Shown piece after piece: positions 4,352-45,762 of a stretch of DNA of 64,000 nucleotides. The notes under the pieces are model-generated. The model made no database searches. It saw nothing but the letters and a program-made list of their open reading frames with translations, and was not told where the DNA came from. Source of the stretch: Klebsormidium nitens (taxonomy: Eukaryota > Plantae > Klebsormidiophyceae). Each line of letters begins with the position of its first letter. Position 1 is the stretch's first letter. Location: contig DF237456.1 in the NCBI GenBank assembly GCA_000708835.1, forward strand, positions 2,950-66,949. Direction: 5' to 3'. Both the position numbers and the translations under genes were made by a program.

Positions 4352-7300
4352 TCATTCTGGGAGCGCTGCTTCTGAGTCCACTCCTTCTCCATCGTCGGTC
4401 TGCGTCTTCGGACCCGGAGCCCCCCCGGCCTGCTTCTTCTTGATGCCGCTCAGGATATCGTCGATCCGGAGTAGCATGCACGCCGCTTCTATCGCAGTCT
4501 TGATCGTCTGTACCTTTACCGCATAAGGCTCCCACACGCCGAGCTCCTTCATGTCCACGATCTCGCCCGTGTTGCCGTTGATGCCGAAGGTCGTGTTGGC
4601 GCCATTGGCGTGCTGCAAAAGAGAAAATGGTTGGATCTTCAGCGCTTCCCTTTGATAGAAACGCTTGTGGCATCCTCGAACTCCCAAACAGATGGTTTCA
4701 AGGACAAATTTCGTCCACTATCTGGCCCGTATGCAAATGCACCAAGAGTTGTGTCGCCGTCATACGCCTGCTGCATAAAAGAAGCTCAAGTATTGAGCAT
4801 TATCAACACAAACAGCGATCAGAACTCCAAAGATTTCGAGACCAACAGTCGCAGAGAACATGGTTTGACGAGATGCCCAGTCGGGTGTTCTGAAACTCAC
4901 GAGTCGTTTTGCTTGTGAGTCACGAACTCCCTACCAAAAGCCTGTCTCACGAGTCTTAGCCTCTTAATGAGTTGGCATTTGCGCCAACTGAGCTGGGCAT
5001 GCCTTGCCTGCCACGCAAGCATCTAAGCATCGACATCGGGTGATGTACTGCCTGTCTGACGCAACGCGGGCTCTTTGATGTTAAGTTCTTCGAGGGTGTC
5101 CTCACCTTGGCTTGCAGCGCCGTCATGACCCTGATGACGTTGACACCGCAGTTCTGCGCGAGCGTTCGGGGGATCACCTCCAGGGCTTGCCCCACCGCCT
5201 TGTACGGGTACTGCACGCCAGCACAGCGAGTGTAGTTTGTTAAGGTTGTCACATCTACGGCTTGCGAACAGTTCGCACTCCCGAAAAGGAAGGTAGGTTA
5301 CGGTAGGGTGTAAAGCTTCTTAGTCACATCACATAAGCTGCAGTAAGCCGAAACTATCGGGCCCGGTCGGGAGGGAAGGATGTCCCGTGAAAGTCGGAAG
5401 GTGCAATCACTTCGACTCTTGAGAACATCTTCTATCGAAGAAATCTTCGATCAGCATGACGTGAAATCCGTTCGGTAAATGCGAAATCGCTACGAGACCA
5501 CCAAAGAAAAAGTTTAGAGGCAATTTTGGGACTCCGAAAGCTGATGTTTCGCCTTCTTGACTCTCGAACTCGCACTCTTTCACGGTCAGACTTCCAGAAT
5601 CTTTGATGTTTTGACGTGACGATGTGACCACTATCAGAAGGGTACCCAGGCGACCACGTAAGTGCTGGATGTGCCGGTCCACGAAAGTATCGACTAAGCA
5701 ACGTCATCCGTAGGCGGCCGCTTCCTCAGAACCTAGATCCATGATTGGTGATATAACAACACGACGTTCCCTTTCCATGCACAAGATTCATCAACGCCGC
5801 GGGACCGTATCGGCTGGACAGTCTCTGCTACAAGTAAGGCGGAGTTGTCTGACCCATACGTCCTTGAGCGGACCTAACAACAAACTAAAACAGACTTCCG
5901 GAGGCGACACAAACATGATCGGCGACACAAAGATGATTAGTAACAATCATGGGAAGACATCGCTAGAACGCACGAAGCGACTGACCAGAGCATCGAAAGT
6001 CAAAACAAAACAGAAGACTGCGCTGATTAAAGACGAGGCTCGTATGCTGAAAATCACCTGCTCGACACCCTCGATGGCCTCCGCCTTTTCTTTGATCTCC
6101 GCAGCCACAGAGAGCTCCACGGCGCCGCCCCCCGGGACGAGCTTCGGATCAATTACCACGTTCCGAGCCACGCCCATGGCGTCCTGCAGCGGCAGTGCAC
6201 ATTTTAGATAGTATGTTTTCTTTCAAAAGCCGGTCACTTTTAGGAACATTGAGACTGCTTTTCGATAATGAACAGCGCACGAAGGTGCCTAGCGACCACT
6301 AGACTTGACGCTCCAGCAGGGGAACATTGGAGGACAATATTCGTGGTTCAGAGGATTTGCTTCAAATCAATGACAGCGTAAGAGACAACTGTGCGGAGTG
6401 GATACATGGGCCTGCTCAACGCCACTTGGTAATGAGCTTCGGCTCTCTTGCAAATACGGGCCCCACATTTTGCTTCCGACCTGCCTGAGCTTCTCCAGTA
6501 CTGTGCCACCCAGACAAGATGAAGTTAGACAACCCCCTGCAATGTTGAACACCGCCCCGTTTCTGTCACTGTGACGAAGTGACATCGGAATTGTCACTCC
6601 CACGACCAACGGAATCCAAGCTGCTGAGATTCCATGCCAAGTAACGTTCAGCGGCGCCTCGTGACTCACGTGCAGATTCCGCTCCACCTCATTAAGCACG
6701 TCCTTGCTGGCGCCCCGCAGCAGGACGGTGCACGCCTTGGGGTTCTCGCAGTCGACGATGAAGGTGAAGTACTCGTCGCCCAGTTTCTGCACCTCGAACA
6801 AGCCCGCGCCCGTGCCAATGTCGCTCTCCTTGAGCTCCTCCGGCCGGTTCACAATCGTCGCGCCTGGTTGCAGAACGTTGGAGAAAATGTTAGTGGAAGC
6901 AATTAGAAGATGTGCACTTTGTGCGATTGTGTCTTGCTGAAGTCAGTGGTAAAAGCGGGCCGCATACAGGGGGTATTAATCTCCGGCAATCGGTTCACGC
7001 TTGTCGCGCCTGGACAGAACTTGCTTCAGGCATGATTACGTTCAACTCGTCCTTACGCAGAATGATTCGACTGATCTAGGTGCTGACGAGTAAGCTCCCT
7101 TTGTTTCTTAAGCCCAGTGTTGCGCTTCTAATGTAAACCCATGAAACGGAGCCACTGGCAACGAAGTGGCTAGACTGTTGCAGAGGAACCAACAAAGCCG
7201 CCATAGCACTAAGTACGACACTATTGCCACTTGCTTTCAAACCAAGATGGCTGCCGGGAATGATCAATCAGTCGGGCAATGACCTTTCGTCGCTCTCAAA

Positions 7301-34449: not shown

Positions 34450-37400
34450 TCAACTCGTTGTATGAGCGGTCGGAAGGAACCCGCAGGCCCAGCCTTCGCA
34501 TATCATTCTTTTGGGCGCTTCCTGCGCGCCCGGCCACAGCCTCGTCGACACCGGCGGCAGCTTCCGCTCGTCAGTCGCGGGCTTCGCCTTCGCCTCCGCG
34601 CTTGGCTCTTGCCAGTCGCCGATGGGCGTGCAGCCGACCGCCTCGTAGTACTCCTCGAGAGCCGCATTGATCACGTTCATGGCGTCGATCATGTAGATCA
34701 TGCCCTGGAGAGAAAGATTGTCCTTCTTAGTCAAGAGAACGACGTTTAATGGCGACTCTCAGACCTGTGGGGTTCTCAGACGTACGCCGCCTGAGTTCGC
34801 TCTTGTCCAGAACGACTGCTAGAAGCGAACTGGACAGTGACATGTGATAAGCGCGAAAAGAGTTGCTGTCGCTTCTTCTTCATCTGGACCGTCAAGAAGG
34901 CGTCACGAAATCGAAAGCTGCAAACTGACTTGATACAGAGCGCGTTTTCAACTCAGCCCTATTATTGCCCAAATCGTTAAGGCGAACACTGTGGGCACGA
35001 TCCAAGCCGTTGGATCAACGTCAAACTGACAGGTGCACGGCTGGAGAGCTTGTACTACCTCTGGCTTTTGCTTCCAGCGACATTCGAACCCAGGGGAACC
35101 TCAGTATACGCAGTGAGGCGCATCTCCGAACCGAGTGCAAGCAGTAAAAGGTCAAACGCACGCAATTTTGGACTGGACGGCGTGCAAAACATAATGGATT
35201 CTTGAGGAGTACCAATCATATCTGAGCAGACCATCTAAAAGTGCACGGATCGGCTAGATTTGCCAAAGTTCACATGTTCTCTTTCTCTCTAACTAAAGCT
35301 ACGTTTGTCCGGGAAAGAGTCCACAGTTTTGAATCTGAAGCAAAAAGCGTGTTTTGTAATTTATGAACGTACCTGCCGGACGTTCTCGTTGGCTTCCACA
35401 AGGGTCGCTGGGTCCGGCGGCTGCTCGAACAGCCGGCAGTTTCCGAGCAGTTTCCGGGCAAAGTACGGGGCCTTGTCCCAGGCCCAGTTCCCCGCCCCAA
35501 TAGTCAGCGTATAGTGCAACAGCTTCGGAACAAGGCCTCCCGTCTCGGTCCCCACGAACAGTTGCAGGTTAAGGTCGTTGCGAATGTGGTGAATCAGACC
35601 CACCTCCGCCGCCCCGAAAACGTACCCGTACATCTCGAGGATCCAGTGCGGTTTTGAGTCGTCCCCCGAGTCGTGCGCGTATTTCCACCCCTTGGGATTC
35701 GTCCGCATGTCCTCGGTTATGCTCAACCACAGCGGCGCCACTTGCTTCAAGTCCTCGACGTGGAAGAGCAGCGTCCCGCCGACCTTTTGGCACAGGTGCG
35801 GGTTCTTGGTGTACATTGCCGCGAGCTCGTTGTCGCACCCGATGAGGTAATTGTAGTGGCTGGCAGTCGGGCGGCCGCGCCGCGCACCCAACTCCCACGG
35901 GATGATCGGCTCCACGAAGATCATGTCCGTGTCTAAGATAATGATATACTCCGCCTTCGGACGTACGAACTCCAACCAGTGCCGGATTGCCAGCGGCTTA
36001 TTGTAAGGGGGGTACCAATCGCCCGAGTCTGGGTGGACTTTGAACGAGGGGACGACGTGCGTCGGGGCGAGATGGAGGTTGTTGTATTTCGCGAGGTCTT
36101 CGGTGCTACAGGAGAGCAGGCGGGTGATCGGCCCAGGTTGGCCGACGCGGCGGTGGCTGTAGACCAGCGCGAGGGTCTGCCAGTCCATGTAGTCGTTGCA
36201 CTCGGCAGAGAAGATGGTGTGAATCCTGCATACATAGATTTCAAAATTCCGCTTATGCTCTGTTCAATCCTGAGATTTTTGAACCCATGGAGACACTTGA
36301 TATACTGAAGACAATGGTTCGTTATCCATGTCGGTCCACTCGGCGGGAGAGGATGGTATAGATTCTGGGCCTGGTTATGCGAGAAGAGGCCAAATGACAG
36401 TTAGGATCTGGGGGTCAGTGTTGTCAAGAGTTTCTGGAGCGAACGGCAGATAACAATAAATCATCCAATTATATACTTGCAATTCGTGCCATCGTTGCTT
36501 GATGATACAGTTTACTACAGAATCCGTATAGTTTTACCCTTTGTATGGTACCTTAAAATCGAATATCACTGTTGTACGTAAGCACCGCTGGAATGTTTTA
36601 TTATCGCAATCCCTTCCTACTCCCTCTCCAATGCCAGGACCCCAAAACCCAAGACCCGGAAACGAACAAAACAGAGCAGAAAGGGTGGTGCACAACTGAT
36701 AAGGAGTGTTGGATATGGGCGACAGTGGTGAAATTTTGCATGGAATCTAGAGAGGGTGCTTTGCAGAACGTGCGCAACCCCTGTAAGAAAGACTTAGCAG
36801 AGTGAGGATTGGTTTGAAAAACTTGGCAGATTGTGGTCGAAGTCACGATTTTTGTGATTGAGCTTTGCAGCAGAAAGCTGGGGGCATACTTCATATGCGA
36901 TGGTCATGGGCGTCACTTATGACAAAACGTTTCCTTTTACATGTACAAGCTCTTTGTCTGGAAACAGCATATGTTGAGGGGCCAACCGTATCAAAAGTGC
37001 GGTGAGATTTTGAGGGGCCATAGAGAAAGCTAGGTTTTGATACAAGCACTCCAAGATTTCAAAAGCATATACTTGATAGAGCTCAGGCAAGCAACAATCG
37101 GTGCTTTGCATTGCTGTGCTCCATTAACCACTTGCATATCGAGTGCACTGATGTCTCTGAGCTGATTGACAAACACAGCTGAAGGTGTTGAACAATATCA
37201 GTCCAAAGCAATGGAAATTGAAGTGAGCTCTGGCATGTGTACGTCCAACATCACGGTTCTTATACCTCCTTGTAAAAGAACGAAGCTGAACGGAGAGCTC
37301 AAGACAGAGAGGCGCAAAATATGTGCAGCTGCGAAAAGCTCACCTGTCATCATACTTGCGCTCTCTGATGGCCCCCTGAACCCTGCCAACCAGCAGCCCT

Positions 37401-37474
37401 ATGCAGAGCAGGACGAAGGGCATCCGCCAAAGAGCTACTCTAGCTGCCACAGGGCAGAGCCTAAGGCGATCCAT
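34450..37474 (-). CDS. Peptidyl-serine alpha-galactosyltransferase (SERGT1/SGT1)-like glycosyltransferase with a single catalytic domain
   Basis: Exons 37344-37474 (hydrophobic signal/anchor), 35373-36225 and 34450-34704. Motifs IHTIFSAECNDYMDWQ, GQPGPITRLLSC, GDWYP..NKP, DXD (ILDTDM), IIPWELGA.RGRP, YLIGCDN, KVGG, EMYGY.FGAAE. Confidence 0.85.
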
Positions 37475-37726: not shown

Positions 37727-38177
37727 NNNNNNNNNNNNNNNNNNNNNNNNNNNNNNNNNNNNNNNNNNNNNNNNNNNNNNNNNNNNNNNNNNNNNNNNNN
37801 NNNNNNNNNNNNNNNNNNNNNNNNNNNNNNNNNNNNNNNNNNNNNNNNNNNNNNNNNNNNNNNNNNNNNNNNNNNNNNNNNNNNNNNNNNNNNNNNNNNN
37901 NNNNNNNNNNNNNNNNNNNNNNNNNNNNNNNNNNNNNNNNNNNNNNNNNNNNNNNNNNNNNNNNNNNNNNNNNNNNNNNNNNNNNNNNNNNNNNNNNNNN
38001 NNNNNNNNNNNNNNNNNNNNNNNNNNNNNNNNNNNNNNNNNNNNNNNNNNNNNNNNNNNNNNNNNNNNNNNNNNNNNNNNNNNNNNNNNNNNNNNNNNNN
38101 NNNNNNNNNNNNNNNNNNNNNNNNNNNNNNNNNNNNNNNNNNNNNNNNNNNNNNNNNNNNNNNNNNNNNNNNNNNNN
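37727..38177. other. Assembly gap (N run)
   Basis: 451 consecutive N. Confidence 1.
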
Positions 38178-38510
38178 ATAGAAACAACCTTCAAGTTCGA
38201 AAACCTGTGCTCAGAGTCCAGACTCAGAGGTGGTTGAGAATTGAAACCGACCTTTATGAAAGCGCCCACGACGACGTCAGAAGCCAGTGTCAATATCTAC
38301 CGGAGCGCTACACTGCGGCTTGATTGACACTGGTGATGCTTTCTTTGCCAGGCTTGGCACCTACCGTACCTATCTGACTCTGACTCTCCCAGTCCGTCTG
38401 AGCTGATGCTTGGATTTGCACTCTGCAGGGCTCACATTATCCCCTGGAAGCGAAAAGGCGCGTCCAGCTTCCTCCTCTTGCTGTCGGTACTTCAGACTAT
38501 TAAGGAGAAC

Positions 38511-38949
38511 ATGAGACGGCAAAGCAATGCTCCAAGGCGCCCCAATCTCTTGACACGTGCGGTGGAGGGCGTGTTTGATCTTGTGCGCCTGGCAGAGTTT
38601 GAGATTCTCTTTGTGGTCTTCCTGGTGATAGTCCTGCTCCTTATCAAGGACCTGGTGAGTACAAGGCCAGAAGACCTACATCTATTTGACGGGAGCACAA
38701 AGCGTTTCCCTCTGTACATCTGAGGATCTGTGGGAATAGGGGAATGTAATTCAGAAGTGCAGAGAAAGCCAATAGAGGAGTAAGTCTCCTGATCAAACTC
38801 TAGGGTTGAGCATCTGCTGCCTGGAGCAAACATTTATCTGCCGATAATCCAAGGACATTTATCTCTACTTTTAACCTCTGTTGCAGACTGCCCGACCACA
38901 ATACAACCAGATATTCACGAGAAGCATCCCGGATCAGTTGAGGCAATAG
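38511..38949 (+). CDS. Spliced 68-aa single-pass membrane microprotein immediately upstream of CFAP20 (uORF or first cistron)
   Basis: Exon 38511-38654 (MRRQSNAPRRPNLLTRAVEGVFDLVRLAEFEILFVVFLVIVLLLIKDL|gtgagt) plus exon 38887-38949 (ttgcag|TARPQYNQIFTRSIPDQLRQ*). Both junctions phase 0, strong splice sites, one TM helix. Confidence 0.8.
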
Positions 38950-38996
38950 GATAGTGGCAAGGGAATAGCAAGCGGCGTGACTGGAAAGCCGCGAAA

Positions 38997-41879
38997 ATGT
39001 TTAAGAACACGTTCCAGTCCGGGTTCCTCTCCATACTGTACAGCATAGGGTAAGCACGCCGTACTTTATTCGAGCCTTCTCACCTGTGGAACTTCCACCA
39101 TCTGAATGCAACTTGTGCAGAATAGTACAAGTGGAAGGGCCAAGGGGGCAAAAAAAGGGCCCCTTGCTTTGTGGGGCTGACTCTACCTAACCAGGGTTTG
39201 TAAAATAGTCCGCTAATTTCTTTTGGGGCAGGACTCAGCTTGCAGGATCACAGTTTTGCTTGGCTTCAGGTTGGGGTTTGCAGAGGGTCTGGGCAGCGAC
39301 TGATGCTCTGTTCCTCTGTCGCAGGAGCAAGCCCCTCCAAATTTGGGACAAACAAGGTGAGGTGTTGACCAGTGATTCAAGCCGATCTGTTCGATTGTTT
39401 TTTGGCAACAAATACCATGTTTCTGACAACATACAACAGTCTTGCTTTCTTGAGCTGTCGTCATCAAGAACAAAGATGAATGGAAAGGGTGTTATGAAGG
39501 TGAAGGGCTGGGAAGGGGCGATTGGATGGAAAATGCAGATTCGACCTGTTGAGTTGTTAAGCGGTTCCGATACTCCTCAGCGTGCACAAATTGCACCAGC
39601 ATCACAATCAAACCACGAGACCCAACAGAACGCAAGCTCTTGCTAGGTTCCCCTTCTTAGAGTGCGCGCATTCTAGACGGGCAATGGGTGCAAGTCTTTG
39701 AGCTGACAGTGAAGTCTGCACATTAACAGGGCAGAAGAGCTGTTTATTTTCTTGAGAATCGGTTGTGAAAGAGTACACAATGTTACTTTTCCAACCTGCA
39801 AGTCTCTCAAGAACCGGTGGAATCAAAGGGTTGAACAGAATTGAAAGGGCCCTTTACAATGCTCCCAGTCGGTCATATCTACAGTGCGGACGGAGTCGGT
39901 CACCCTAAGCACCGCCTTCGATAGTTCCAGAAAGAAAGTCAATTGACGATTAAGACACCATACATGCACTTGAAAGATCAAAACTAGAACCTCTAGTCAG
40001 TTAATGAGCTGAGGAAGGGACGCAGTCTGGGCAATCATTGTCCACTCTCCTCTAGCACCCCTAGCTGAGTAGACCGTCTTCTACCGGAAGTGCGTACATC
40101 AAATGCAGCGCGTTCAAGCTCAACTTTTCTTGCCCCTCTGCAGAAGAGACTGATCACATCAGGCGTGCAGCTCGCCAATCTTTGAACTTTCTCCTGTCCA
40201 CGCAGTTAAGAAATGGGCGCATCAAGCGCGTCACTTGCCAACATCTCAAGTGCTCTTTCCCACAGCAATAAAGCATGGCACTCATTAACGCATTTCATTT
40301 TTCACTTTATTTTGTAATCAAGAATGGGCACATTAAGCACACTGCTTGCTTAGGCACATTCTTCATTCTCCCTCTGCTGTCAAGAATGGGCACATTTAGC
40401 GCAACACGGACGGCGACATCGAGAGCAGCGTCCTGGAGATCATTTACACTAACGTCAGCACCAACTTCATGACAATCATGGCATCGCTCGCTAAAAATTC
40501 AACTTCGCTCCTATCCACGCAGTCAAGAATGGGCACATCAAACGCATCACAGATGGCGACATCCAGAGCAGCGTCCTGGAGATCATGGGCACCAACGTCA
40601 GCACCAACTTCATCACATGCCCTGCGGACCCGCAGGCCACGCTGGGGATCAAGCTCCCGTTCCTGGTCATGATTATCAAGAACCTCAAGAAGTACTTCAC
40701 GTTCGAGGTCCAGGTGCTCGACGACAAGAATGTGCGCCGCCGGTTCCGGGCGTCCAACTATCAGGTGCGGTTTCGTCGGCGTTGTGCATCTATGCTTTGG
40801 TTGTCCTGTTCTCCGCAGAAGCTGAGTCGGTTGGAACATCGAGTGCGCTTGGAATCTAGATACCCGTTTGGACAAAGACGAGGATCGGTTTCGGGCTCTT
40901 GGGGTCTTCAAGGGCGGATCAATCTGTTCTCATTTTTGATTGATCAGAAGCTGCGGTTGATTTGAGTTGCGATACTGGCTGCCTGGACCGTCTCATCCGC
41001 CGAATAGGTCACTCACTGATCAATCTTTGATTTCCATTTTTACATTGAAAGCAAAGCCAGCGACGCTTTGAGATGTTCTAATCTTGAAAAACGAAAGCTA
41101 GGCCGTGGGACACCAGAAAACGTGGGGTACGTGTCACAAATATGCCTCAAAGACCGAGCAATTTAAACTCCTGAACTTGCATTTTCAAAGCTAGTCCGTT
41201 ACACGGCACCGCTTTAATCTTGTTAGATGGTCAGAAAGTCTTAAAGTCCTTGCTTCCCACACTATACTCTCTGTCTCACGTCGGCGTCCTGAGCTTCCAA
41301 CTGCAAACCTGGCCCCCAAAATCCCTAGCTTCGATCTTTTAACGCTTCTGACAGTCAGCTGCGTGCAAAGCGTTCCCTCTGCATCGTGCCTCTTCGCCCG
41401 GACCACATCTAGCTCACTTTGAAGCAGCTGGAAACGGCCCCGACTTCGGACTGTGTAAAAGAACGCACAGCCTTCTGTGGTGTTCCTCACTGCAGTCGAA
41501 GACGCACGTGAAGCCCTTACATCCGCAGGATATCCATGCGAGTAGGATATCAAATATGTTTTGCATGCCGGGCTTCCGCAGAGCATCGAAAGTACTGTCA
41601 AATGCTAACTTCTATCGACTCGCACTGCTTTTCCTCCCACAGTCGACCACGCGGGTGAAGCCGTTCATCTGCACGATGCCCATGCGGCTGGACGAGGGCT
41701 GGAACCAGATCCAGTTCAACCTGAGCGACTTCACGCGGCGCGCGTACGGCACCAACTACATCGAGACGCTGCGCGTGCAGATCCACGCCAACTGCCGCAT
41801 CCGTCGCATCTACTTCTCCGACCGGCTCTACTCCGAGGAGGAGCTGCCGCCGGAGTTCAAACTCTTCCTGCCCATCCAG
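38997..41879 (+). CDS. CFAP20: Cilia- and flagella-associated protein 20 (BUG22); short last exon not resolved
   Basis: Exons 38997-39049 ([18 protein letters not shown]), 39325-39356 ([10 protein letters not shown]), 40523-40764 (VKNGHIKR...[10 protein letters not shown]) and 41643-41879 ([27 protein letters not shown]...FKLFLPIQ). Confidence 0.97.
40206..40620 (+). repeat. Three intronic degenerate copies of the start of CFAP20 exon 3
   Basis: t(c/t)aaga(a)atgggc(a/g)cat at ~40206 (with a ccacgcag acceptor), ~40318 and ~40381 (extends ~90 nt); functional copy at 40523. Confidence 0.9.
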
Positions 41880-43761
41880 GTAGGTTAAGGACCTCGAGTT
41901 TGGACATGGTTTGGATTCTGCCAGGGTTTACATTCATAGTTAAGCAGCCGTGCTTGGTGTTCACCGCTTTCTGGAACTTTGCTGATTCCAAGGACGAACT
42001 ACCGCTAGAGTCCAAGCTTTTCCTGCCTACCCAGGTGGGTCAAGAAACCAAAAAAAACCGAACATGGAAGTTTTCAGTTTGTCGGTGATGACGGAGTGGA
42101 TCTTTTGGTTCAGCAGAACGTTTATGGCAGATATGGCTGTGAATAAGGATGAAAGCATCTCAGGAAAGCTCTGATGTCGAGTGCGCAACGCTTTGCTTTT
42201 ACATCAAGTCTCGACCAGAACGTGGGGAGCCGCTGCTCTGCTTTTGTCCTGCTCACTGTTGGCTTGGTAACAGAAGATGTCTGCGCACTCAGCAACTCGA
42301 AAAGGACGGAGAGTCAGAGCTGATAGGATTTCTAGATCGAACCCATAGGCAATTGCCTTTCAAGGCTAGAAAAGACGAGTGACTCGCACCTCTTTTGAAC
42401 AACCCCTTGTTGTCATAACCTGCGCTCATGAGTTGCATTTTGGCTCGGTTGTTGGGCTCTGCCCGATATAGAGAGCCGATCACGGGAATAAAGGGCCAAG
42501 GTTTGTCGATGGTCAAAGCAGTCCCCGCATCGGACCCTTTCGAACCCTCTTTGGTTTGCTGCTTTGAATCAGTCCATTCGGGTCTGCCCGAACCGCATGT
42601 CCTTCGAGAATGAAGTATTTGTCAGCTTTTGAAAACGTCTTGTTTCCAAACGGGTGTGAAACCAGAAGCGAGCCTGCTACGTATCAATATTATTGCGATA
42701 TGCAACCGCTCATTGGGCGGTCCAGAAGGATGGATGATCTGACGTTCTCTCTTGCTTGTGTAGAAAACGTCATGAAGGGCAGGCGCTCGCAGCTCATAGG
42801 TTAGGATCGAACTATCGGAACATGCAACCGAGGTGGATAGGCCATGCTTGAAGAATGATTGGAAGCCGGTTTTGAAAACATCCTTGAAACGCTCTAGTGC
42901 AAGGAGGCTGAAAGCAGCGTTTGCTTCGAGCTCCATGCGTGATGTACATTCAGCAATTGCAACGGATCTCGGCGGATGAGGCCTTCAAATCCGAGCCTTG
43001 AAAATCAGTTGCAACCGCCAAAACGCAATCTTGGGAACCGTCAAGCAAGCTCGTAATATTCTGCAGTAGTCAGTACTGCACTTCTCAGGGGACGAAAAGC
43101 TCCCCTCGGTGGTTTTCCCTTTCATTTAGTGACCAACATGACGGTCACAAAAATGTTGGCGGCTTCAAGCTGATTGCAACCTTGTTTAAATTGTTGTCTC
43201 TCTCAAAAGCTGTCTTTAGCACGGCCCAGAGTGCTCGAGTTTTATCTGAGGAACTCAAGGCATGACGGACGGTTGTTGCAATCTAAAATAATATGCTGTC
43301 ACGACTAAGGAAAAACCCAAAATTTCCCAATTCCATGATCCGTGTGCTATAATCGTCATCAAATGTGCACTATAGTATAGCTGCCTAGGCTTAAAGGCTT
43401 CCGCAACAATGATGACCTCCGGCCATCCAATCGCTTTCATCTGTTCGATTTTAACTCTGGGGGCGGCCCTATACCGTAACCATTGTGACAGCTGACAAAG
43501 CGGAGAGCCCCGGATCCCCTGTCTGCATGTTTTAACCAACGCAGGGGTAACCGCTAACGCGGTTATATATAGCGCGTACTGCAACCGTAAACCACCCAAA
43601 AGCCAGTTAACCCTATCGTTTTAAGATGCTGCTCGGCGCTCGCGCACATGCGGCGGGTTACAGAAAGCGCGGCTGAATCAAACATGTGCATGCTGACTTT
43701 GTTCGATTCACTTCCGTTCCAAGGTTTTGTGTTCAGAACTTGAACTTGAACTTGAAGCAGC

Positions 43762-45762
43762 TTGCGCCAGCTTCGGAAGGCAGAAGGGCCGGACAGGGCC
43801 GCGAATCAGAGGCAAGAGGTGGCTATGGAGGGCGCTGTGCCACCTTGCCAGCAGCTCCCGCTCGCGCCAGTCATCCCCCAGCATCTCTCACAGGTTAGCA
43901 TTTCATCGTTGCCAGAGGTGCTCCTGCACAGCATCATAGCCTCCACTAGCAGTCTTCTGGACAGGAATAACGTGGCGCTAACATGCAAGGGATTCCGGGA
44001 CGTGGAGCGTGCTACAAGGGTGACACTACGAGTGCGGCAGTCCCCCCCAAAGTTCCTGCCAAAGTTAGGGTTTGCAGGGTTCCGGAATGTAACTGAGCTT
44101 GACCTGTCCGCCTTGGACCTGAGAGCCCATGAGCGTGCTGACTTCGGGTTTTCGAATAAGCATAGGGAGACTGTCGCAAGGGTTCTTAGAGAGGGTCTGC
44201 CCAACGTGAAGTCGCTCAGGGTGCGCCAAGAATCCTTCATGACGAGGTGTGCTGTCCAAGCTTGGCCCTGCATGGAAAAGCTTGAGATCCAGGAGTGTCC
44301 AAGAGGTACCGAGGATCCTTTCTGGATAGACCTTGATTGGGTGCATGTACTAGGCAAGCTGAGTTGCCTGGTGGAGCTCTCATTTATTCCCAAACCTTGG
44401 GCAAAAGGCATAAGGAGTATAAGGGAGCCTTTTGAGGGTTTCATTGTGAGTCTAGGACAGTCACCCAGGCAGTACCCGTCTCTCACTGCGCTCCGAAGCT
44501 GCTTCTTTGCAACAGACAAGGTGCTTTCAGTCATTGGGAAGGCGATGCCGAACCTCACTTCTCTGGACCTGATCAACAACCTGCTGGATGTCTACTATAA
44601 TGGCAATGCCATACTGACGAACGAGGGTATAAAGCACCTGAGCACTGATTACCCGCTTCTGACGGAATTGAAAATTGGTGGGGATGTTCCTTCACACACG
44701 GCGCTGGACTTAAAGGCAGTTAATCTAGACGTAGTTGGCAAAACGGCTTTGCGGGCTTTTTGCCAATCTCAATTGAGCTCGCTGTGCTTGGAAGGACCTA
44801 TGTCTTTGCAACTTGGCGTGATGGTGGACCATTTGATTTCTAGCCGACAGAAGAAGCTACATCTTCATTGGTCGGGCTGGCGTTTAGAGGAGTCCAAGGA
44901 TTCTGAGAAACTGAGTAGTGTGACGAATCTGACGGATGTGTCCCTTGGATACTTAGCTGAGAAAGAAGTGAACTTGGAGAGGCTTAGAGAGTTGGTGCTC
45001 ACAAACAAACGTCTGTCGCAACTGGAGCTTGTAATTCATCCAGGGGGCTATTGGAGAAACTCCTTATGGAGGGACACCTTGGGGTTTGTAGTCACGAATG
45101 CAAGGAGCCTGGTTTCGTTCACTTTCGCATCGGATACAAGTGGGCCAACCATCCTAGAAGTAGTGTCGAAGTTGTCGCCTGCGCGAATGCGGTTACAGGC
45201 TTTGAAGCTGCGACTGTGGGGCGTAGGGGTCGTCGTGCACAGTCAAGAAGACTGGCCAGCATTGAGAAATCTGAGCTTGGAGTTCCATGATGATTGCATT
45301 GAGCAGCAAAACCTGGGGTGCTGGCTGCAGACTTGTTCCGACTTGACCAGTCTCAGATACCAGTGCATCACAAGGTCGTTGAGCAAATACTCCGCTCTGC
45401 CTTTCCTGGTCAGTCTGCAAAGCCTTCGCCATCTCGAGGTGGGGACGTTTACTACCAATAAGTGCATCGAACATATATTGGTCCTTCCACAGTTGAGGAG
45501 CATCGTCCTTTGTGATCCATTCGATAGAGTTCCAAAGAAGTTTGGTGACCTGCGTAGACACCCTAACTTGCAGAGCATAGCACTCAAGTGCGACTTGACC
45601 TTTGAAAATTTCTCCCCTTACTCGGATCATGTAGAGAAATCAAAGATAGCTCCTCTTTTGGAGCCTCTTCTAGAGAGCAAGAGTTTGCAGCAAGTGAAGA
45701 GCAACTTCGACATTCTAAATCTGAGCAGCGAATTTAGGAGAAGATTGTACGTTGCGCCGTGA
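43762..45762 (+). CDS. Intronless F-box/LRR protein, MAX2/D3-like
   Basis: 666-aa uninterrupted ORF (true start may be the later MEGAVP). F-box ISSLPEVLLHSII...DRNNVALTCKGFRDVERATRVTLRVR, FRNVTELDLS, then degenerate LRRs. Confidence 0.7.
   Translation: MRQLRKAEGPDRAANQRQEVAMEGAVPPCQQLPLAPVIPQHLSQVSISSLPEVLLHSIIASTSSLLDRNNVALTCKGFRDVERATRVTLRVRQSPPKFLPKLGFAGFRNVTELDLSALDLRAHERADFGFSNKHRETVARVLREGLPNVKSLRVRQESFMTRCAVQAWPCMEKLEIQECPRGTEDPFWIDLDWVHVLGKLSCLVELSFIPKPWAKGIRSIREPFEGFIVSLGQSPRQYPSLTALRSCFFATDKVLSVIGKAMPNLTSLDLINNLLDVYYNGNAILTNEGIKHLSTDYPLLTELKIGGDVPSHTALDLKAVNLDVVGKTALRAFCQSQLSSLCLEGPMSLQLGVMVDHLISSRQKKLHLHWSGWRLEESKDSEKLSSVTNLTDVSLGYLAEKEVNLERLRELVLTNKRLSQLELVIHPGGYWRNSLWRDTLGFVVTNARSLVSFTFASDTSGPTILEVVSKLSPARMRLQALKLRLWGVGVVVHSQEDWPALRNLSLEFHDDCIEQQNLGCWLQTCSDLTSLRYQCITRSLSKYSALPFLVSLQSLRHLEVGTFTTNKCIEHILVLPQLRSIVLCDPFDRVPKKFGDLRRHPNLQSIALKCDLTFENFSPYSDHVEKSKIAPLLEPLLESKSLQQVKSNFDILNLSSEFRRRLYVAP

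Follow-up and report, generated by a model that had tools for sequence, protein, structure and literature searches.

How can two proteins be made from neighboring genes when the end of the first and the beginning of the second lie on one and the same internal exon? The question is raised by a locus of the charophyte alga Klebsormidium nitens, in which an open reading frame (ORF) of 68 codons, here ORF1, is directly followed by the gene for CFAP20/BUG22, the inner-junction protein of ciliary doublet microtubules. All coordinates refer to the window, the whole stretch of 64,000 nucleotides (nt) that was analyzed on contig DF237456.1 of assembly GCA_000708835.1; window position 38511 is position 6001 of the locus that we call L001. 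The GenBank annotation describes two separate coding sequences (CDSs) at the locus, one of 68 amino acids (aa; KFL_005070050) and one of 191 aa (with PF05018). We consider it probable that one promoter gives rise to one spliced bicistronic mRNA for a microprotein and CFAP20, and that CFAP20 is reached by leaky scanning.

The unit consists of the following elements, in order along the plus strand:

37727-38177, no strand: assembly gap of 451 N in the divergent promoter region between an HPAT-domain gene and the ORF1-CFAP20 unit
38348-38510, plus strand: 5' untranslated region (UTR) as far as RNA contigs reach; the contigs begin at 38348 (run X11), 38451 (X10) and ~38494 (X2)
38406-38408, plus strand: ATG 5' of ORF1 and in frame with it, its context weak (C at -3 and at +4), which would add 35 residues if used
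38511-38654, plus strand: exon 1 CDS of ORF1 (KFL_005070050), 48 codons, for a basic N-terminus, an amphipathic helix and a transmembrane helix
38527-38553, plus strand: ORF of 8 codons including the stop, opened by the single further, out-of-frame ATG that the spliced mRNA has between its two start codons
38655-38886, plus strand: ORF1 intron, GT..AG, phase 0, after the K-D-L codons, from RNA contig joints
38887-39049, plus strand: internal exon shared by ORF1 and CFAP20, 163 nt, with a splice joint at either end, from sequence and RNA contig joints
39325-39356, plus strand: CFAP20 coding exon 2, from RNA joints and the rebuilt CDS
40523-40764, plus strand: CFAP20 coding exon 3, from RNA joints and the rebuilt CDS
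41643-41879, plus strand: CFAP20 coding exon 4, from RNA joints and the rebuilt CDS
42764-42900, plus strand: last CFAP20 exon, with CDS to 42775 (TGA) and a 3' UTR that goes on past 42900

Spliced ORF1 measures 207 nt (68 aa) and ends at the TAG at 38947-38949. Its ATG at 38511 stands in the context gagaacATGa, and its splice sites read CTG/GTGAGT at the donor and ...TCTGTTGCAG/ACT at the acceptor (intron GTGAGT...TTGCAG). The shared exon carries the 20 C-terminal codons of ORF1 with the TAG (38887-38949), a spacer (38950-38996) and CFAP20 coding exon 1 (38997-39049, 53 nt), behind which follows a GTAAGC donor at 39050; the CFAP20 ATG at 38997 lies 47 nt past the ORF1 stop and in another frame. 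Because ORF1 ends and CFAP20 starts on one internal exon, neither gene has room for a poly(A) site or a promoter of its own. The CFAP20 CDS rebuilt from five exons has 576 nt, codes for 191 aa without internal stops and matched CFAP20 loci of plants and algae at 57-100% identity (tblastn). A preliminary description of this DNA had proposed the two-exon 68-aa ORF with strong splice sites and its TAG, as well as the CFAP20 ATG on the same exon in another frame; these coordinates were exact, and the RNA contigs hold the joints on both sides of the shared exon. It had ended the unit at 41879, which has to be corrected, as CFAP20 has a fifth coding exon of 12 nt (42764-42775). Contig beginnings cannot define a transcription start; as an observation only, they would allow a 5' UTR ranging from ~17 to 163 nt in length.

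The locus is contained in 20 public runs from 7 studies, and we examined 4 runs from 4 studies as Logan contigs. All five introns, that of ORF1 and the four of CFAP20, were confirmed as exact GT..AG joints in 4/4 runs, and therefore the contigs are derived from RNA. Exon 38887-39049 is joined on its 5' side to ORF1 exon 1 and on its 3' side to CFAP20 exon 2. A single 878-nt contig of depth 116 in X10 extends from 60 nt 5' of the ORF1 ATG across both ORF1 exons into four CFAP20 exons (blocks 38451-38653, 38886-39048, 39324-39354, 40521-40761 and 41640-41879). Separate contigs in X2 have depths of 270 over ORF1 exon 1, 268 over the ORF1 joint and 268 over the CFAP20 exons, and the corresponding depths in X11 are 58-77, 107 and 84. 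CFAP20 intron 1 is covered at a depth of 0-5 versus 84-268 over the spliced parts, a value that speaks against a major poly(A) site in this intron and hence against a separate ORF1 mRNA from such a site. As a contig over two genes does not prove a single molecule, co-transcription of ORF1 and CFAP20 in K. nitens is, at contig level, strongly supported rather than proven.

This limit leaves room for an alternative with two overlapping but separate transcription units, in which the ORF1 mRNA would end in the shared exon or in CFAP20 intron 1, the CFAP20 mRNA would come from its own promoter, situated in that same exon or in the ORF1 intron, and the contigs would chain both. We regard this arrangement as improbable. 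The equal depths of ORF1 exon 1, joint and CFAP20 exons in X2, the one uninterrupted contig in X10 and the low coverage of CFAP20 intron 1 all speak against it, and comparison with other plants, described below, bears on it as well.

The preliminary description had suggested locating homologues of the small ORF relative to CFAP20. In all linked genomic loci, namely those of a Klebsormidium-like metagenome contig (L002), of Marchantia, Ceratodon and Ceratopteris (L003-L006) and L011, the two genes are immediate neighbors on one strand, the microprotein gene being 5' of CFAP20 and its last exon bearing the CFAP20 ATG. The linked loci and their distances from the ORF1 stop to the CFAP20 ATG are as follows:

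L002, Klebsormidium-like metagenome contig: 31 nt
L003, Marchantia polymorpha: 3 nt (TGAGAAATG)
L004 and L005, Ceratodon purpureus, two assemblies: 7 nt
L006, Ceratopteris richardii: 2 nt (TAGACATG)
L011, linked locus: 263 nt
L012, intron-free contig with both ORFs complete (65-aa ORF and 190-aa CFAP20): 91 nt
L013/L014, moss-like, intron-free contig with both ORFs complete: 7 nt
L020, moss-like, intron-free contig with both ORFs complete: 8 nt

Probably the pairing is no younger than the ancestor shared by Klebsormidium and land plants and was split up in flowering plants. With only 2-8 nt between the ORFs in Marchantia, mosses and the fern, a poly(A) signal has no room outside the CFAP20 CDS, which speaks against separate transcription units; in their favor, the land-plant ORF1 introns, at 789-2685 nt, could house a promoter. 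The spacer is conserved neither in length (2, 3, 7, 8, 31, 47, 91 and 263 nt) nor in sequence (47% identity between the two Klebsormidium genomes), which argues against a conserved internal ribosome entry element.

The spacer also bears on a second alternative, in which the mRNA is bicistronic and CFAP20 is reached by termination and reinitiation after ORF1 or after the 8-codon ORF at +16. The land-plant stops and starts 2-8 nt apart resemble stop-start coupling, the ORF1 AUG of K. nitens has A at -3, and both Klebsormidium genomes have the ATG at +16 with its very short ORF; short ORFs permit reinitiation. The variable length and sequence of the spacer are evidence against this route, and it is generally known that an ORF of 68 codons is long for efficient reinitiation. 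In chlorophyte bicistrons, moreover, a stronger ORF1 context leads to less ORF2 product and a weaker one to more, which is evidence against reinitiation in those loci (PMC11892635). We view reinitiation as rather unlikely, and the distribution of ATGs along the transcript points in the same direction.

Between the ORF1 ATG and the CFAP20 ATG, the spliced 254 nt of K. nitens contain 1 further ATG versus 5.3 expected from dinucleotide shuffles (P=0.003-0.007). Across nine linked loci we observed 6 ATGs versus 24.7 expected (ratio 0.24), as against 16 versus 20.0 expected (ratio 0.80) in seven unlinked copies of the microprotein gene; the Fisher combined P for six distinct linked lineages is 0.0026. 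The depletion extends into ORF1 exon 1, where it is predicted by leaky scanning and is not required by reinitiation or by a CFAP20-only transcript that starts downstream. An ATG-free shared exon would fit a plain CFAP20 5' UTR too, as separate transcription units would have it, but such a downstream-starting mRNA leaves the depletion in ORF1 exon 1 unexplained. As to start contexts, the ORF1 ATG has A at both -3 and +4 in K. nitens and L002; in Marchantia, Ceratodon, L013 and L020 these positions are T and C, respectively. The CFAP20 ATG has A or G at -3 in all linked loci compared.

Leaky scanning would work here as follows. A single promoter region, divergent from the HPAT gene and partly hidden in the N gap, would drive a spliced mRNA with two independent ORFs, ORF1 for the 68-residue membrane microprotein and ORF2 for CFAP20/BUG22. 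Part of the scanning 40S subunits would start at the ORF1 AUG. The others would bypass it, and the next AUG available to them would be that of CFAP20 because the intervening 254 nt are kept nearly free of AUGs. Translation of both ORFs from single molecules would follow from this scheme. It is speculative that a short 5' UTR in some conditions, or the 8-codon ORF at +16, might aid the bypass of the ORF1 AUG. The out-of-frame ATG at +16 occurs at the same position in L002 (6017), in different codons (N-A versus H-V).

The ORF1 product is 100% identical to 'hypothetical protein KFL_005070050 [Klebsormidium nitens]'. It shares 57-67% identity with angiosperm proteins of 67-99 aa, and 57-84% when homologues from uncultured relatives are included with those of angiosperms. 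Residues T-R, V, V-F, R-L-A-E-F-E-I-L-F-V, F, K-D-L, R-P and Y-N are invariant in the alignments, and the hallmarks of the family are all present: an A-E-F-E core at the start of the transmembrane helix, a K-D-L / R-P-x-Y-N motif, and a phase-0 intron after K-D-L. Because the invariant core spans the predicted splice junction, the spliced reading of ORF1 is correct. An exhaustive profile search retrieved 107 representative proteins at E<=0.001, with named homologues in Marchantia polymorpha (Mp_2g17220), Ceratodon purpureus, Ceratopteris richardii, Closterium, Pyramimonas, Arabidopsis lyrata, Brassica and Linum; they are annotated as 'uncharacterized' or, in Brassicaceae, as 'GRIP/coiled-coil protein'. 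K. nitens, Marchantia, Ceratodon and Ceratopteris agree in the position of the intron, and this position is evidently old, since many gene models read into the intron straight after K-D-L.

The most hydrophobic window of 19 residues comprises residues 27-45 (mean Kyte-Doolittle value 2.96), the N-terminal side carries a net positive charge, and AlphaFold2 returned a single helix over residues 13-50 with a predicted local distance difference test score of 84-93 in the core. The ORF1 product, which is strongly conserved in green plants, is thus predicted to be a single-pass membrane protein. A Pfam search of the microprotein gave a chance match alone (NOT1_connector, E=0.14) and no family, and the ESM Atlas yielded its own streptophyte cluster together with meaningless helical structure matches, with no functional lead. 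Two longer proteins that were considered as microprotein-CFAP20 fusions were rejected: P0132 (375 aa) is an unrelated acyltransferase, and P0127 (307 aa) is a Closterium model with an extended N-terminus.

The comparison with L002, whose introns are saturated with respect to K. nitens, gives identities of 81-83% for the ORF1 exons versus 55-58% for introns and flanks. Codon changes in ORF1 number 25 synonymous and 7 non-synonymous, a pattern which indicates that ORF1 is under purifying selection. The 5' sequence before the conserved MRRQ start has an in-frame stop and no ATG in L002, Marchantia, Ceratopteris and L012; the in-frame ATG at 38406 is therefore species-specific and the conserved start is the methionine of MRRQ. 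In mosses we observed a semi-conserved in-frame N-terminal extension (MYVRE...) before the MRRRQ start (L004 10001-10159; L013; L020; P0039, P0109, P0111), which may mean a longer microprotein in mosses or, alternatively, an overlapping start further 5'.

These results bear on a third alternative, that the small ORF is mainly a regulatory upstream ORF (uORF) which throttles CFAP20 translation, its peptide being no functional product in Klebsormidium. Its position fits a uORF, any translated uORF is generally known to lower downstream initiation, and CFAP20 is presumably needed only in flagellate cells, yet its transcript is abundant in the sampled cultures. However, the peptide is conserved over its full length, with a core invariant from Klebsormidium to angiosperms and a conserved intron position; its codon changes are mostly synonymous; in grass-like and Brassicaceae-like contigs its gene stands alone and gives a separate mRNA; and it is a predicted membrane protein. 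Regulation may coexist with a functional peptide and cannot replace it, and this alternative appears highly improbable. The preliminary description had attributed one transmembrane helix to the ORF, had pointed to a likeness to a conserved small protein of land plants and had judged the ORF to be probably a real gene rather than a chance uORF, and it was right on all three: the hydrophobic segment and the AlphaFold2 helix agree with the first, the identity to angiosperm proteins and the invariant core with the second, and the homologues, the codon changes and the stand-alone gene in angiosperms with the third.

Several observations weigh against a bicistronic mRNA read by leaky scanning. The RNA evidence consists entirely of de Bruijn contigs, which may chain overlapping transcripts and give no starts, ends or strand. 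The ORF1 intron is retained more than the others: a contig over 38625-38915 has a depth of 42-60 versus ~270 for the spliced form in X1 and X2 (16-22%), while CFAP20 introns 1-3 are at depth 0-10. If transcription also began internally, within the shared exon or the ORF1 intron, a CFAP20-only mRNA could arise, for example in flagellate cells. The ORF1 ATG of K. nitens, with A at -3, is not obviously weak, the 263-nt spacer of L011 has two ATGs, and linkage of the two genes is not universal. The intron coverage has a bearing on separate transcription units, as starts within the ORF1 intron could contribute to its 5-10x depth over the CFAP20 introns (X1, X2), but the contig over 38625-38915 reaches into exon 1 and is thus better read as intron retention than as an internal start. 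Either slow splicing or regulated retention of the ORF1 intron may lie behind it. How ribosomes reach CFAP20 past an AUG with A at -3 had been posed as a question in the preliminary description; the depletion of ATGs points to leaky scanning as the route, and the worry over the A at -3 stands.

Spliced mRNAs of the microprotein without CFAP20 were found in grass-like (L030, L031) and Brassicaceae-like (L022) contigs as well as in L019 and L021. Genomic contigs, extending up to ~4 kb downstream of the microprotein gene, are likewise without CFAP20 in Brassicaceae-like (L032-L035) and moss-like (L024-L028, L036-L039) sequences, stand-alone microprotein loci or mRNAs are also present in grass-like L040-L043, and in chlorophyte-like L007 CFAP20 is not within 1.9 kb of the microprotein gene. 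For the comparison of ciliated with non-ciliated plants that the preliminary description had proposed, linkage was found in liverwort, mosses and fern and not in grass-like and Brassicaceae-like contigs, the latter being assigned to angiosperms by sequence likeness. A second moss-like group of the microprotein (L021, L024-L028, L034, L036-L039), from Joint Genome Institute (JGI) metagenome contigs with a GC content of ~0.40 (MRRQQRGPPASL...RNAEFEILF), has a monocistronic spliced mRNA (L021); it is either a paralogue that escaped the pairing or comes from a lineage that lost it.

Loss of CFAP20 from angiosperms was considered and rejected, as the L012 CFAP20 query matched Brassica, Eutrema, Oryza, Salix, Malus and many other angiosperms. 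Retention of BUG22 in non-ciliated plants has been described (PMC3268115; PMC10179502). Flowering plants thus appear to keep both CFAP20/BUG22 and the microprotein, unlinked in the lineages examined. The framing of CFAP20 as a ciliary factor in the preliminary description holds for the identity of the protein and does not hold for a scope restricted to cilia. In a CFAP20 tree of 26 rows the linked copies fall with non-plant CFAP20s, apart from the angiosperm group (support 89/99); the tree is under-sampled and mostly unresolved, and we draw no conclusion on paralogy from it.

Upstream of the unit, an HPAT-domain gene (PF23452) occupies 34450-37423 on the minus strand, head-to-head with ORF1, and the 451-N gap ends 334 nt 5' of the ORF1 ATG. 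The HPAT gene has the same head-to-head orientation in L002 (3101-3982), and the region between it and the unit may therefore act as a bidirectional promoter. An Rfam scan of 38178-43800 gave no match.

Two further features of CFAP20 were observed. The last intron (41880-42763) is kept in contigs over 41850-42791 in 3/4 runs, and over the shorter 41850-42581 in X11, at ~10-30% of the spliced depth, which would change the C-terminus from ...LPIQKTS* to ...LPIQVG*; this form could represent intron retention or an alternative 3' end. CFAP20 intron 2 contains at 40380-40474 a diverged 95-nt copy of the first 95 nt of exon 3 (83/95 identical), 48 nt 5' of the true exon start at 40523. The copy has an in-frame stop, RNA joints occur only at the true exon, and the exons of L002 are flanked by comparable weak 'echo' matches.

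Bicistronic mRNAs translated by leaky scanning have been described in chlorophytes (Duenas 2025, PMC11892635). They are characterized by a small ORF1, short spacers and 5' UTRs, a weak ORF1 context and depletion of AUGs before ORF2, and the published spacer medians of green-lineage bicistrons are 40-183 nt (PMC11892635). The locus of K. nitens resembles them in its short spacer (47 nt, and 2-8 nt in land plants) and in an ORF1 of 207 nt that is much shorter than the ORF2 of 576 nt. Chlorophyte loci such as TOM22-like/SDHAF3-like, REX1S/REX1B and OST4 (PMC7896298, PMC11892635) likewise place a small ORF1 before a larger ORF2 with a short spacer; their ORF1 often encodes a tiny membrane protein, ATGs are depleted before ORF2, colinearity is conserved, and the T at -3 of ORF1 in Marchantia and mosses would match their weak ORF1 context. 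In contrast, the CFAP20 locus belongs to Streptophyta, outside the surveys of PMC7896298 and PMC11892635, its two ORFs share an internal exon flanked by introns, and the ORF1 of K. nitens is not weak at -3.

Together with these loci, the closest known system is CDC26_TTM3, a deeply conserved bicistron that occurs in land plants as well as in green algae (PMC11892635, citing Lorenzo-Orts et al.). There, as would be the case here, a short upstream ORF for a genuine conserved small protein is followed on one mRNA by a longer ORF, and green lineages that diverged very long ago have kept the arrangement. In both, the stop of ORF1 is 5' of exon junctions or a long 3' region; in K. nitens it precedes four exon junctions, and an interplay with nonsense-mediated decay is therefore plausible, as for CDC26_TTM3. 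The two differ in the gene pair, here a membrane microprotein and CFAP20/BUG22 known from sequence and RNA contigs, and in its history, as the present pair was kept in Klebsormidium, liverwort, mosses and fern and dissolved in grass-like and Brassicaceae-like contigs. Conserved peptide uORFs (CPuORFs) also encode a conserved peptide 5' of a main ORF on the same mRNA. Their peptides act in cis on the translating ribosome and, to our knowledge, are not found as free-standing genes. By comparison, the microprotein is predicted to be transmembrane and has its own monocistronic gene in angiosperm-like contigs (L022, L030-L035, L040-L043).

The main texts of PMC7896298 and PMC11892635 do not mention FAP20, and in the literature, the supplementary tables of Gallaher 2021 (Chlamydomonas) not being covered, we found no plant or algal study in which CFAP20/BUG22/FAP20 is tied to an mRNA with two or more cistrons. 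Since both genes are already annotated as separate CDSs, only the shared mRNA would be new. The preliminary description had spoken of a possibly undescribed two-gene unit; the joined ORFs in RNA contigs and the conserved adjacency agree with this, and the genes themselves were already known to the annotation. The apparent novelty lies in the mRNA common to both and in the reach of its conservation, from Klebsormidium to ferns.

The documented nuclear bicistrons of the green lineage are mostly from chlorophytes, and the CFAP20 pair would add one that reaches from a charophyte alga to ferns. The rules derived from chlorophytes, a small ORF1, a short spacer and ATG depletion, would then hold on the streptophyte side too. 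The locus also shows that gene models limited to CDSs hide shared transcripts. For a very conserved microprotein of green plants the pairing is a first lead, as it supplies a well-studied partner. It is possible, though we hold it to be doubtful, that the microprotein and CFAP20/BUG22 have been functional partners on one mRNA since before land plants, with the microprotein acting as a membrane anchor, an assembly factor or a member of a shared pathway. If so, the bicistron would set the ratio, or the site of production, of the two proteins, and a common non-ciliary role could help to explain why both genes are retained in cilia-less flowering plants. The puzzle of BUG22/CFAP20 in plants without cilia (PMC3268115) becomes testable in this way, as Marchantia is transformable and carries the pair with a gap of 3 nt.

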